DNA of 64,000 bases from Basidiobolus meristosporus CBS 931.73. Its lineage: Eukaryota; Fungi; Basidiobolomycota. The translations under genes were made by a program, and so were the position numbers. Position 1 is the stretch's first letter. Each line of letters begins with the position of its first letter. The stretch is from contig MCFE01000213.1 in assembly GCA_002104905.1 (NCBI GenBank), positions 1-64,000 on the forward strand. Reading direction: 5' to 3'. The notes under the pieces are model-generated. The model ran no database searches. It saw nothing but the letters and a program-made list of their open reading frames with translations, and had not been told where the DNA came from. Of the stretch, positions 58,900-64,000 are shown piece by piece.

Positions 58900-59850
58900 C
58901 CAAGCCAATTACAAGTAGGGAACCGGCCCCATCGCTGATATCTCAAGTGGGGCTCATTGAGTAGCCAGATTGTAGAATCTAATTGATAAAGAATTGATCA
59001 TCTAACTCCAAACCTCCATTGGGTTAGCCAATCAGTGGCTCAGTCGTTTGGTAATGAAAAACTTGAACCAAGTCGCTGAAAACTATCCCTTAAACAAACT
59101 CGTATCTTTTGCTGATTTCATGTGAATAATAGCCTCTCAGATGCAAGTATATTGGTTCTTTGCAATGTAACACTAAATATATCCTCAGGTGGCTTTGACG
59201 GTTTATCATAACATCAATGAACGTTTGTCATCCACTCTACGTAGTTTCATGCTTATCATCCCGGGCTTATTCGGTAAAACTGCACTCCAATCACAGTCTT
59301 GAAGATACCGGATGAATACGATATTTGATCAAGATGTAGTGAGTCAAATGTAATATTGATGAATCTTAATATGTTAACAAACTGTAGTCAATTTGAGTCA
59401 TCTGCTTCAGAATCCATCAAATTCGGACAAAATGGATATCTATTATCGTACACGTGTGCACCTCTTCACTTCCAAATAAGGAGCCGTGGCATCGATTTGA
59501 AGCATCATGTGGGTTGCTCTTCTGAACTAGTCGATATATTTGGTGTTTCCAGGTTCCTTGACTGATACTACTTCAGAGTTAATTATCTTATTGATGGGAA
59601 AATCATACATCTGTCACGGCCAATCTTTGGTTATCGTGAGTTTGCCGCAAACTTTCCTGTGAAGTTGCCACTTGGGTTACAAATATATTTCCTTGCTATA
59701 CTGACTGAGGTTATATCATAGTACATGAAATCGATACGGATTGGAAACGACTGGTTTAGATACTTCGAATAGTATACAATCGATATAATAGGTGAATAAA
59801 TCCACAGATTACGGATGCCATATTCCTCATCCAACTTGGGGTGCACGCAT
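58900..59850 (-). mobile_element. Possible decayed L1-like retroelement relic upstream of CPA1
   Basis: Degenerate ordered motifs RIDFMY, TRVR..ISILS, EADDS, IRYL and NGGLEL; many stops and frameshifts. Confidence 0.3.
59340..59400. promoter_or_regulatory. Two Gcn4/CpcA (AP-1-type) consensus sites
   Basis: TGAGTCA at 59340-59346 and 59394-59400 (the second is TTGAGTCAT), ~630-690 bp upstream of the CPA1 uORF. Confidence 0.45.
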
Positions 59851-60024
59851 TTACTTCATAATTGGTCATAGTAACTCGGGAACATCTCCAGCACTGAATA
59901 AATAGCCTTGCTATCCGCCGTTGAGCTCAATTGCCTTTATTCAAAGCTTCTGACTTTCTCACTGAACTTCCTTAGTCGCAGTCCGCGACTTCTACCAACA
60001 AGCTACTAACCTTTCAGGTTTTAC

Positions 60025-60181
60025 ATGTACTTCCACACCCAAGAAAAGAACTCATCTGACTACATCTCTGACCAAAGTAACCCTCTTTCCTTTACTTCTA
60101 TGCATCCTGTGGGTCCGCTCGCAACCGATTCTAACTGTTTTCTCTATTCTAGTTTGGAAAGCTCTCAATCAAACCAACTAA
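60025..60181 (+). promoter_or_regulatory. Spliced upstream ORF encoding an arginine attenuator peptide (26 aa)
   Basis: Exon 60025-60076, intron 60077-60152 (GTAACC, CTAAC at 60131, TTCTAG), exon 60153-60181 give MYFHTQEKNSSDYISDQIWKALNQTN. D12, Y13, D16 and W19 are in register with the N. crassa AAP. Confidence 0.93.
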
Positions 60182-60289
60182 ATCTAACCAGTTATCTCAA
60201 GCTATTACTCCACAAGTTTATCTCTCCGTCCAGCAACTATTCAACGCTCAACACACAATTACTAGAATACTTTAAATTTCATCAAGAAA

Positions 60290-61612
60290 ATGTCTTTCCT
60301 TACTTTCTCCAAGACTACTCGCTCCCTCCTCAGCGGTCACAAGATCGCTCGTAACTTGTTAGCAGTTCGCAACCTTGCTACAGTCTCTGACTCTCCAGTC
60401 CATTCGTCTCCATTTGTCACTCCTGCTGGTGCCTCTACATCATCTCTTGCTGCTTTGAAACTCAAATCCGGCCAAGTTTTCAAGGGCACCTCGTTCGGTG
60501 GCTCCAAATCCGCCTCTGGTGAAGCAGTTTTCACCACCTCATTGGTTGGTTATCCAGAGTCAATGACCGATCCTTCGTACCGTGGTCAAATCCTTGTGTT
60601 CACCCAACCGCTTATCGGAAACTACGGCGTTCCAGGTATGGCCAAGGATGAACACGGCCTCCTCAAATACTTCGAGTCGGAGGCTATCCACTGCCGTGGT
60701 ATCGTGGTCAGCGACTACGCCACCAAGTATTCTCATTGGAATGCCGTCGAATCGCTTGGTGAATGGTGTGCTCGCTACAATATCCCCGCCATCAGTGGTG
60801 TTGATACTAGAGCGATTGTTCACATCCTTCGTGATCAAGGTTCCACTTTGGGTCAACTTGCTGTTGGTAAAGAGGATATCGAGTCCGACATCACTCAATT
60901 TGAGGATCCCAACCAGAAGAATCTTGTGGCCGAGGTCTCAACCAAAGTCCCTATTGAATTCAATCCCAAGGGTGACGTGAAGATTGCAGTTGTTGATTGT
61001 GGAATCAAGCAGAACATCATCCGTTGCTTGGTTTCCCGTGGTGCGCACGTCACTTTGCTACCATGGGACTACGATTACAACAAAGAAGCCAACAAATATG
61101 ATGGTTTGTTCATTTCCAACGGACCTGGTTCTCCCAAGGTACTTGGTCCCACCGTTCACAACCTTCAGAAGGCCATCTCCAACTTCAACAAACCGATCTT
61201 TGGTATTTGCATGGGAAATTTGGTGTTGGGACTTGCTGCTGGCTTGGACTCCTACAAACTACGTTTTGGCAATCGTGGCCATAACCAGCCGGCTGTGAAC
61301 GTAACCAACGGCCAATGCGTTATCACTTCACAGAACCACGGTTATGCCCTCAAGGATGATGAACTACCCTCTGGATGGGCAAAATACTTCATCAATGCTA
61401 ACGATGGTTCCAACGAAGGCATCCGCCACTTGACCAAGCCAATTCGCTCAGTCCAATTCCATCCCGAGGCTAAAGGTGGACCACAAGACACCGAGTATCT
61501 TTTCAATGAGTTCATTCAGGAAGTTCGCGCTGAGAAAGCCAAGAGATATCAAAGCAACGTTTTCGTCGAGGAGACCATCCCTGTTCAGAAAGAGACCTTG
61601 GCCGTTGCTTAA
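60290..61612 (+). CDS. CPA1: Carbamoyl-phosphate synthase small (glutaminase) subunit, arginine-specific
   Basis: Intronless 440 aa ORF with GEAVFTTSLVGYPESMTDPSYRGQILVFTQPLIGNYG, SNGPG, GICMG (catalytic Cys), SQNHGYA and VQFHPE. The N-terminus is Arg/Ser-rich and acid-free, like a mitochondrial presequence. Confidence 0.98.
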   Translation: MSFLTFSKTTRSLLSGHKIARNLLAVRNLATVSDSPVHSSPFVTPAGASTSSLAALKLKSGQVFKGTSFGGSKSASGEAVFTTSLVGYPESMTDPSYRGQILVFTQPLIGNYGVPGMAKDEHGLLKYFESEAIHCRGIVVSDYATKYSHWNAVESLGEWCARYNIPAISGVDTRAIVHILRDQGSTLGQLAVGKEDIESDITQFEDPNQKNLVAEVSTKVPIEFNPKGDVKIAVVDCGIKQNIIRCLVSRGAHVTLLPWDYDYNKEANKYDGLFISNGPGSPKVLGPTVHNLQKAISNFNKPIFGICMGNLVLGLAAGLDSYKLRFGNRGHNQPAVNVTNGQCVITSQNHGYALKDDELPSGWAKYFINANDGSNEGIRHLTKPIRSVQFHPEAKGGPQDTEYLFNEFIQEVRAEKAKRYQSNVFVEETIPVQKETLAVA

Positions 61613-61978
61613 CTGTTTGCGACAAGTCATTTGCGACTCTGTGAGTGTGTGAGTATGGAATTTCTCTAGTCCGTTTCATTCGAATTATCATTATTATTAT
61701 CCTTTGCGTATTCTTCTATCAATCTCTATTGTATATTCTGTGACGGAGGATGATATCGTTTAAAAACAAAAAAAAATCAATAAAAATGACGTTGAAAGTT
61801 GATTCTGATGTATTGAGTAAATTCAATACTACTTCATTGTCCGGGAAAATCTATAAACCACGATTTTGTTTCAAAACCATCCCGATTCTGTATAAACAAT
61901 GTTTAATCGTGGTACGTCAAGTTACATATATTGGAGATATAGACCGTTACTGTCAGATGATATCAGTCATTTAAAAAA

Positions 61979-63684
61979 TCAAATGGGGTTTGGTGGCTTC
62001 TCAACATGAATTCTTGGTACATCCAAGCTGAGTTTTTCTATTGAAAGTGAAGCAGCCGGATCATCAAACGATGGCAAATCGGCAGACTTCGAATTTTCCT
62101 CGGCAATCCGAGGAATGCCTGGGGACAATGAAGTCCGAGGGCTGGGACTAGGGCTGCGACTTTGACTCGATATGTCTCGACTCTCTACGCTCATAGAATC
62201 TGAAGAACGGCTCCATCGTCTGCTCATACGGTTGACGATAGTAATTACCTCTACAGCTTTGCGAAGTGTACGACGAGGATTGAAATTTTCGCGTACGTTA
62301 CTAAGGAGATCGACTTCATGCGCAGTTTGACCCGCCAACCATCGATGGTGTAACGCTTGTGCGGCAGTAAAGCGCGTGTCTGGATTAGGATCTAAGAGAT
62401 GACTAATAAAATCCTTCGCTGGATGAAAAGCAGAGGCTCAGCTAAGCTGTGGACGAAGAGTCTAAATACAAAAAAGTACCATCTTCAGATACATTGCACC
62501 AATATTTCTCATCGAACCTATATTTGGCTCTGCGCAGAGCATTTAGATACTCAGGGTGACCTTCCCATCGTTGGAATGGTAGATATCCACAGAGTCTGGT
62601 GTTGGTATTCATCTAACTTAGTCCGAGTACGATGAGGGTCAATGTTCATAATGTGAACTTACAGGATGTATGTAATGACTCTACAGAAAAAAGACAAGCT
62701 ATGAGCTGATGATTTCCTTAGGAAATTGAATGTAAATGAAATACCAACCCAATGCTCCACATATCAACTGGCTTTCCGTATCCTCTTTTCCAGAGAATTT
62801 CTGGCGCTATGTTGGTAGGAACGTGGATGTTAATTGCACAGCCCGTTGCAAAGCATGGAATACATCTTGTCACCTGTGTATCCTCGCGACCCGCAAACAG
62901 TTCTTAATATATCTTCATCGTCGGTTACGGATTTCGCAACTCTGAACATCAGTTAGAAAAGGAAGATCTCTAATAGTAAGTATGCATGGTCTCACCCGAA
63001 GTCTACGACCATCAGAGGAGCGTCAGGACTAGGATCCTTGAATAGGAGGTTCTCTGGTTTTAAGTCTACATCAAGGATTGTAGTTTCTCAGTATGCTGAG
63101 TAGTGCTGAAGTATGACCTGCGTAGAAATTACCTCTATGTACAACATTCTCTCGATGTAGATATGCGACGGTATCAATCAAAGTATGCACAACCTTGACG
63201 GCATCTTTCTCCGTGAATTTGCCTTGCTCGATGATTCGATCAAAAAGCTCACCTCCACGAACACTGTAAATTGGGAGTTACTCACCATATCTGACGAAAG
63301 GATCGCAGGAAAGGCCAGGGCAAAGATACTTACAGCTCGAATACCAAATAGAATTTTGTTTTTGATTCGAACCAGTCAATCAAGCCTACCACATTGGGAT
63401 GTTGGAGTTTTTTGACCGTCGCAAGCTCTCTATAAACCATATCCAGGCGATCACCTAAGCGTTCCTTCAGTATAACCTTGATCGCCACCAGTTGTCCTGT
63501 TTTAGTAACTTGAGCCTCCTTCACTTCTCCATAACTGCCAGAACCTAAGAAGAATGTATTTTGTGGGTAGGTTGATTTTACGGCCCTTGGTCTATTTCCA
63601 GATACCTAGTACTTTCCCGATCTTGTACTGCCTTTTTTTTTCGTGGCTAGCTGGTTGTCCTAGAAGTTTATCAACCAAGTTCAT
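61979..63684 (-). CDS. CMK1: Ca2+/calmodulin-dependent protein kinase (CaMK I/Cmk1-2-like), multi-exon
   Basis: Hand-spliced: MNLVDKLLGQPASHEKKRQYKIGKVL|GSGSYG, VAIK, FEL|VRGGELFDRI, HR|DLKPENLL, DFG, and a CaM-binding-like NFNPRRTLRKAVEVI. Confidence 0.9.
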
Positions 63685-64000
63685 ACTCGCTTATACTGGC
63701 TGGATATTTGTAGACAAATGACTAGCAAAGGGTGGAAGTAATAGCGTTATAATGGTATTGGCTATTCTAGTCATGTGGATACCCTATCACCTAACCCTCG
63801 GCGACCAAATCAAGCCAGTTTCAACTCAATGTTCATCAATGAGCTTAGCCAATGGACAGCAGGCTCGCACACAAGTATAATCAGGATATAGAGAGCATAT
63901 GTAAAACGATTGGTTTTGGCTAGGATTATAGAGACATCAATATCCAAGCCCATGTGCCTCTATACCCGGGTTTCATGGCCAGCATATGTATAGATAATCT

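Follow-up and report, generated by a model that had tools for sequence, protein, structure and literature searches.

In Neurospora crassa and Saccharomyces cerevisiae, the leader of the arg-2 and CPA1 mRNA, respectively, carries a short upstream open reading frame (uORF) encoding the arginine attenuator peptide (AAP), which has 24 residues in the former fungus and 25 in the latter. [quoted passage not shown] The substitution D12N abolishes the arginine response, and Asp12 contacts uL4 at the constriction of the exit tunnel (PMC7038982). At position 17, the characterised peptides have His, whereas the peptide described here has Gln.

The AAP family is well known, and attenuator peptides of non-Dikarya fungi and their intron have probably already been published. 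The surveys of fungal attenuator peptides by Hood et al. (2007) and Spevak et al. (2010) reportedly included zygomycete and chytrid sequences. In the open full-text literature, no paper linking the attenuator peptide to zygomycetes, chytrids, or Basidiobolus was found. The description of the system as one known in Dikarya, which came with the original prediction for this locus, probably understates the literature.

Here we describe the CPA1 leader in a 64,000-nt stretch of Basidiobolus DNA (the window). The element in this leader is very probably the Basidiobolus orthologue of the fungal AAP uORF of CPA1/arg-2, which arrests ribosomes at high arginine, and it is a textbook member of the non-Dikarya form of the family.

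Results

Structure of the uORF in the CPA1 leader

The uORF lies on the plus strand in two exons and starts with the ATG at 60025. Exon 1 (60025..60076) is 52 nt long, corresponding to 17 codons plus 1 nt, and encodes MYFHTQEKNSSDYISDQ. Exon 2 (60153..60181, plus strand) completes the codon of Ile18 and continues with WKALNQTN and a TAA stop. The exons are separated by a phase-1 spliceosomal intron of 76 nt (60077..60152, plus strand). The intron begins with GTAACC and ends with TAG, and its branch site, CTAAC, is situated 22 nt before the 3′ end. The spliced uORF consists of 26 codons and is translated to MYFHTQEKNSSDYISDQIWKALNQTN, followed by the stop codon. A spacer of 108 nt without AUG (60182..60289, plus strand) lies between the uORF stop and the CPA1 AUG. 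The 76-nt intron, the peptide, and the 108-nt gap given in the original prediction were all reproduced at the same coordinates.

The intron is located between Gln17 and Ile18, inside the conserved core of the peptide, which in the window consists of D12, Y13, I14, S15, D16, Q17, I18, W19, and K20. Since the intron divides the uORF in this manner, ORF finders miss it, as had been pointed out.

The 5′ leader preceding the uORF (59942..60024, plus strand) is also free of AUG. The RNA contigs of two runs described below (X1 and X22) start matching the window at 59942; a loose end of the X22 contig extends upstream of this position, and the true 5′ end of the leader may be slightly upstream of it. 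With the start of the contigs taken as its boundary, the spliced leader contains no AUG other than that of the uORF. The context of this AUG is weak, with T at both -3 and +4, and that of the CPA1 AUG is strong, with A at -3. A TATA-like AATAAATA is found on the plus strand at 59897..59904, approximately 40 nt 5′ of the first transcribed base in the RNA contigs (59942), and could serve as a promoter element. A scan of 59700-60400 against Rfam gave no match at E ≤ 1; a known structured RNA is therefore not a rival for the uORF in this region.

Splicing of the leader intron

The region 59850-61700 was compared with four public runs (X1, X8, X22, and X23), the labels of which read only "RNA?" or "?". 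The contigs of these runs were 90-99% identical to the window, indicating that they were derived from close relatives, other than the source strain. From X1, which is labelled RNA? and has a depth of 46, a single contig of mRNA size (1739 nt) was obtained. This contig matches 59942-60076, jumps to 60153, and is then collinear with the window through the whole coding sequence (CDS) past 61700. The same joint from 60076 to 60153, skipping 76 nt with GT..AG borders, was present in the X8 contig. In X22, the equivalent joint was observed with a TT to TC change, which is synonymous and keeps Ile18. In X23, the loose end before 60153 corresponds to the tail of exon 1 with two synonymous changes in Ser codons. 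Thus, the claimed splicing of the 76-nt intron was substantiated by the exact junction in RNA contigs of relatives in two runs and by its equivalents in the other two. All words of the unspliced form were contained in DNA runs of the probable source. Among the contigs of the four runs, which drop rare isoforms, no RNA contig with the intron was found.

A metagenome contig from a relative of Mortierella (L099) contains the uORF without interruption. When this contig was aligned to the genomic locus of Linnemannia, it skipped precisely the intron predicted there, which independently supports splicing at the codon-17 site.

Membership in the AAP family

The spliced peptide was matched by the Pfam family PF08252 (Leader_CPA1, the arg-2/CPA1 leader peptide) with a score of 25.6 bits (E = 8.1e-6), the curated cut-off being 18.5. 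Residues 10-23 of the peptide were aligned in register to positions 10-23 of the 23-position model. This alignment and the spliced translation confirmed that D12, Y13, D16, and W19 are in register with the known peptides, with Gln replacing the usual His. The 26-codon uORF has the core D-Y-[IL]-S-D-[HQ]-[ILV]-W-[KR] with Asp at residue 12, and its placement in the CPA1 leader was evident from X1, one RNA contig of which extends from the leader across the spliced uORF and the complete CDS. With regard to the relatives described below, the Rhizopus peptide scored 13.9 bits, which is below the cut-off, and the chytrid peptide gave no match. The PF08252 model appears to have been built mainly on peptides of the His type.

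Compared with the N. crassa arg-2 uORF, the Basidiobolus uORF is in the leader of the same gene, is of similar length, and has Asp12, Tyr13, Ser15, Asp16, and Trp19 at equal distances from Met1. Both peptides share the tail W-[KR]-A-L-N, and the stop codon follows a few codons past the core in each. However, Gln17 takes the place of His17, Ile that of Leu at positions 14 and 18, and the N-terminal halves are unrelated (MYFHTQEKNS in Basidiobolus and MNGRPSVFTS in N. crassa). The S. cerevisiae CPA1 uORF, which has the same gene context, shares the core DYISD-x-IWK with Basidiobolus in every residue except x. It is intronless, has His at x, and has the Asp as residue 13, whereas the Basidiobolus uORF has an intron, Gln17, and Asp12.

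Selection on the peptide within Basidiobolus

Conservation of the leader was compared pairwise among three Basidiobolus species. The uORF exons were 69-85% identical, whereas identity was only 30-56% in the intron, in the spacer, and in 100 nt of upstream sequence; the exons accordingly form an island of conservation between diverged flanks. Codon differences in the uORF were synonymous in 7-12 cases and non-synonymous in 4-5, and synonymous changes outnumbered non-synonymous ones in every pair. The non-synonymous changes fell outside the core, except for Ser11/Ala11. The uORF is hence under purifying selection at the level of the peptide, beyond the mere maintenance of an open reading frame.

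AAP uORFs of other non-Dikarya fungi

For eleven fungi outside Dikarya, the CPA1 locus was retrieved, and the 1.5 kb upstream was scanned with a splice-aware script. The versions of Geosiphon and Synchytrium gave no match in the motif scan and were found by a position-weighted scan. An orthologous uORF was present in ten other lineages: B. ranarum, B. meristosporus, Calcarisporiella, Phycomyces, Rhizopus, Linnemannia, Dimargaris, Coemansia, Geosiphon, and Phlyctochytrium. Besides Basidiobolus, the phyla and subphyla with the uORF are Mucoromycota, Mortierellomycota, Glomeromycotina, Kickxellomycotina, and Chytridiomycota. This recurrence upstream of CPA1, together with the PF08252 score, places the element far beyond chance.

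In the first seven of these lineages, exon 1 has 52 nt and codon 17 is followed by a phase-1 intron. Exon 1 was 52 nt in all of the eight intron-bearing lineages tabulated, and the length of the intron in the intron-bearing relatives outside Dikarya was 54-195 nt. The Geosiphon uORF, MQPYSDTTAADYIAHQ/VWKTSTVGF (the slash marking the intron), is more divergent but has the same intron site and phase. In the chytrid Phlyctochytrium (L010:1183-1340), the uORF reads MFSYRHSYEKVSLDYISDQ/VFKSLSA, with the intron 1 nt earlier and Phe for Trp19. The Coemansia uORF, MYTHSFERNSSDYIADQVWKALDI, is intronless. The comparison of intron positions proposed with the original prediction therefore yielded an intron at the same site in nine of the ten other lineages, counting that of Phlyctochytrium with its shift of 1 nt. 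In Synchytrium (L011:1295-1465), a remnant …SNDYIADQ/VYKSFIAA was found with Tyr for Trp19; an in-frame stop is located upstream, after which there is no in-frame AUG. Judging from this sequence, the attenuator uORF of Synchytrium may be decaying.

The consensus of the non-Dikarya peptides is MYxHxQE[KR]NSxDYIxDQ[IV]WK. Gln17 was found in every non-Dikarya lineage examined (11/11), and hence it is the rule outside Dikarya. Accordingly, the view of the Basidiobolus uORF as a divergent instance did not hold, because the standard non-Dikarya form likewise has Gln17, the N-terminus MYxHxQEK, and an intron at this site. The other non-Dikarya AAP uORFs differ from that of Basidiobolus in the variable positions and in the lengths of intron and spacer, and those of the chytrids differ also at Trp19.

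The context of both start codons was tabulated for nine lineages. In every one of them, the uORF AUG was preceded by a pyrimidine at -3 and followed by T at +4. At the main CPA1 AUG, position -3 was occupied by A in eight lineages and by G in the other. This combination of a weak uORF AUG and a strong main AUG is the arrangement expected for leaky scanning.

Two minor observations were made on the annotation of these loci. In Calcarisporiella (L003:863-1469), the public annotation places a gene of 73 aa, which belongs to no Pfam family, immediately before CPA1. This gene model covers the spliced attenuator uORF (ATG at 1271, stop ending at 1419), and it was probably called in error from leader sequence. 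In Linnemannia (L007:745-1500), the uORF stop is 756 nt before the called CPA1 AUG, versus 28-169 nt in the other lineages. The distance is approximately 500 nt in the related transcript-like contig L099, which suggests either that the leader contains a further intron or that the CPA1 start was called wrongly.

Dikarya-type uORFs and a second intron site

Metagenome contigs were scanned for the contiguous core from D12 to K20, and at least 120 matches were obtained. Just upstream of a CPA1 homologue lay 27 of the 120 core matches listed. One of the contigs (L125) has the exact peptide of the S. cerevisiae CPA1 uORF in this position, and another (L045) has a Neurospora-like peptide. Many of the matches listed were Pezizomycotina-like peptides reading M…FTSQDYISDHLWKA…, and each of these had His17.

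In several long genomic contigs of the Pezizomycotina-like type, the uORF is interrupted by an intron between Gln11 and Asp12. Examples are found at L097:6477-6640 (86 nt, GTATGT…CTATAG), L076:2055-2240, and L013:~890-1060, the last being placed one base inside the Asp codon. These introns are either in phase 0 or displaced by one base into the codon of Asp12, approximately 17-19 nt upstream of the Basidiobolus site. When the metagenome was searched for His-type uORFs interrupted at the Basidiobolus site, 0 matches were obtained with a strict pattern that also demanded Gln11 and a GTNNGT donor. Thus, as read from the genomic sequences, attenuator uORFs carry introns at two sites, of which the one at codon 17/18 is that of early-diverging fungi and the one at codon 11/12 that of the Pezizomycotina-like contigs.

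Discussion

Proposed mechanism and alternative explanations

The original prediction of an AAP uORF controlling CPA1 is supported by the Pfam match, the position of the sole AUG in the CPA1 leader, the splicing in RNA of relatives, the selection on the peptide, and the orthologues outside Dikarya. By analogy with N. crassa and yeast, the following mechanism can be proposed for Basidiobolus. Transcription of the CPA1 mRNA would start near 59940, and removal of the 76-nt leader intron would join the two exons into the 26-codon uORF. Some scanning ribosomes are expected to bypass the uORF AUG, because its context is weak, and to translate CPA1. Ribosomes reading the uORF would hold the nascent peptide with its core D12-Y-I-S-D-Q-I-W19-K in the exit tunnel. 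At low arginine, ribosomes would either bypass the uORF AUG or terminate normally, and CPA1 would be made. [quoted passage not shown] The arrest would probably also expose the mRNA to nonsense-mediated decay.

The substitution at position 17 invites a different reading, in which peptides of the Gln17 type are no arginine sensors and the conserved uORF acts as an arginine-insensitive brake, lowering CPA1 constitutively or in response to another signal. Besides the replacement of His17 in all eleven non-Dikarya lineages, the Phe or Tyr in place of Trp19 in the chytrid versions and the scores of the Rhizopus and chytrid peptides under the PF08252 cut-off are in line with such a loss of sensing. 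However, a uORF acting independently of its sequence has no need of the strong conservation of the peptide that was observed together with synonymous drift. The core D-Y-I-S-D-x-[IV]-W-K, the register of Asp12, and the link to a gene of the arginine pathway are moreover all retained, and the window peptide itself scores above the cut-off. We therefore regard an insensitive brake as quite improbable. An even smaller probability is given to regulated intron retention as the main control, with the attenuator peptide being secondary. When the intron is retained, the ORF opened by the uORF AUG extends over 109 codons (60025..60354, plus strand) and runs past the CPA1 AUG at 60290 out of frame with it, so that translation of this ORF would shut off CPA1; the same overlap, with 90 codons, is present in B. 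meristosporus. However, the retained-intron frame ends short of the main AUG in six other lineages (B. ranarum, Calcarisporiella, Phycomyces, Rhizopus, Linnemannia, and Dimargaris). The stop is inside the intron in most of these six, including B. ranarum, where it comes after 34 codons. The lack of intron-containing RNA contigs mentioned above also speaks against this reading, within the limit that contigs drop rare forms. A conserved overlap was rejected, as it varies even within the genus Basidiobolus, and the overlap in the window is thus judged to be incidental. Finally, a functionless chance ORF across a fortuitous GT..AG pair, for which the small size of the element alone could be cited, was refuted by the junction in RNA, the PF08252 match above the cut-off, and the recurrence upstream of CPA1 across several fungal phyla, and its probability is close to nil.

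An AAP uORF in which splicing assembles an arginine-sensing peptide thus remains the preferred reading, and a further layer could be imagined on top of it. The codon-17 intron might be ancient, reaching from chytrids to Basidiobolus, and selectively kept because it splits the core so that only spliced mRNA senses arginine; regulated retention might then be a second layer of CPA1 control, and in Pezizomycotina the codon-17 intron might have been replaced by a different one at codon 11/12. We consider this extension unlikely.

Significance of the non-Dikarya form

The findings leave the known attenuator mechanism unchanged. They add a correctly delimited regulatory uORF, which is absent from the public records compared, several of which name the gene "CAD". 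In addition, the uORFs provide a set of naturally occurring mutations in an arginine sensor of the nascent-peptide kind, with His17 in the Dikarya type versus Gln17 in the non-Dikarya type, and with Trp19 changed to Phe or Tyr in two chytrids. These natural substitutions could guide mutagenesis and structural work on the recognition of arginine by the peptide and the ribosome tunnel. Furthermore, the presence of two intron positions in a uORF of approximately 25 codons bears on the gain, loss, or sliding of introns in very short coding regions.

The CPA1 gene and its neighbourhood

The main ORF at 60290..61612 on the plus strand encodes CPA1/arg-2, the small subunit of arginine-specific carbamoyl-phosphate synthetase (CPSase), with 440 aa. 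It consists of the domains CPSase_sm_chain (PF00988) and class-I glutamine amidotransferase (GATase, PF00117), and approximately 55 aa stand before the first of them. The CDS had been described as intronless; indeed, the ORF is uninterrupted, and the X1 RNA contig is collinear with the window from 60153 to 61700.

Among the matches listed, the protein was 86% identical to that of Basidiobolus ranarum and 83% identical to a B. meristosporus record. These identities assign the window to a species of Basidiobolus and bear out the guess of an early-diverging lineage, and the phylum of the genus Basidiobolus at NCBI is Basidiobolomycota. The next matches listed were from Mucoromycota, Glomeromycotina, Mortierellomycota, Kickxellomycotina, and chytrids, with 60-73% identity; this comparison covers the best 120 matches, all of which are non-Dikarya.

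In many NCBI records (e.g. P0002, P0019, and P0061), the CPA1 homologue of approximately 440 aa is called "Multifunctional pyrimidine synthesis protein CAD". The name is misleading for a two-domain small chain of the arginine-specific CPSase.

On the 3′ side of CPA1, the region 61979-63700 on the minus strand looks like an intron-split Ser/Thr protein kinase, and an ORF at 63330-63524 reads like the N-lobe of a kinase. The corresponding neighbour of CPA1 in B. ranarum and B. meristosporus is a homologue of HSP70/HYOU1. The local gene order therefore differs, with the HSP70/HYOU1 homologue adjoining CPA1 in those two and the kinase-like sequence in the window.
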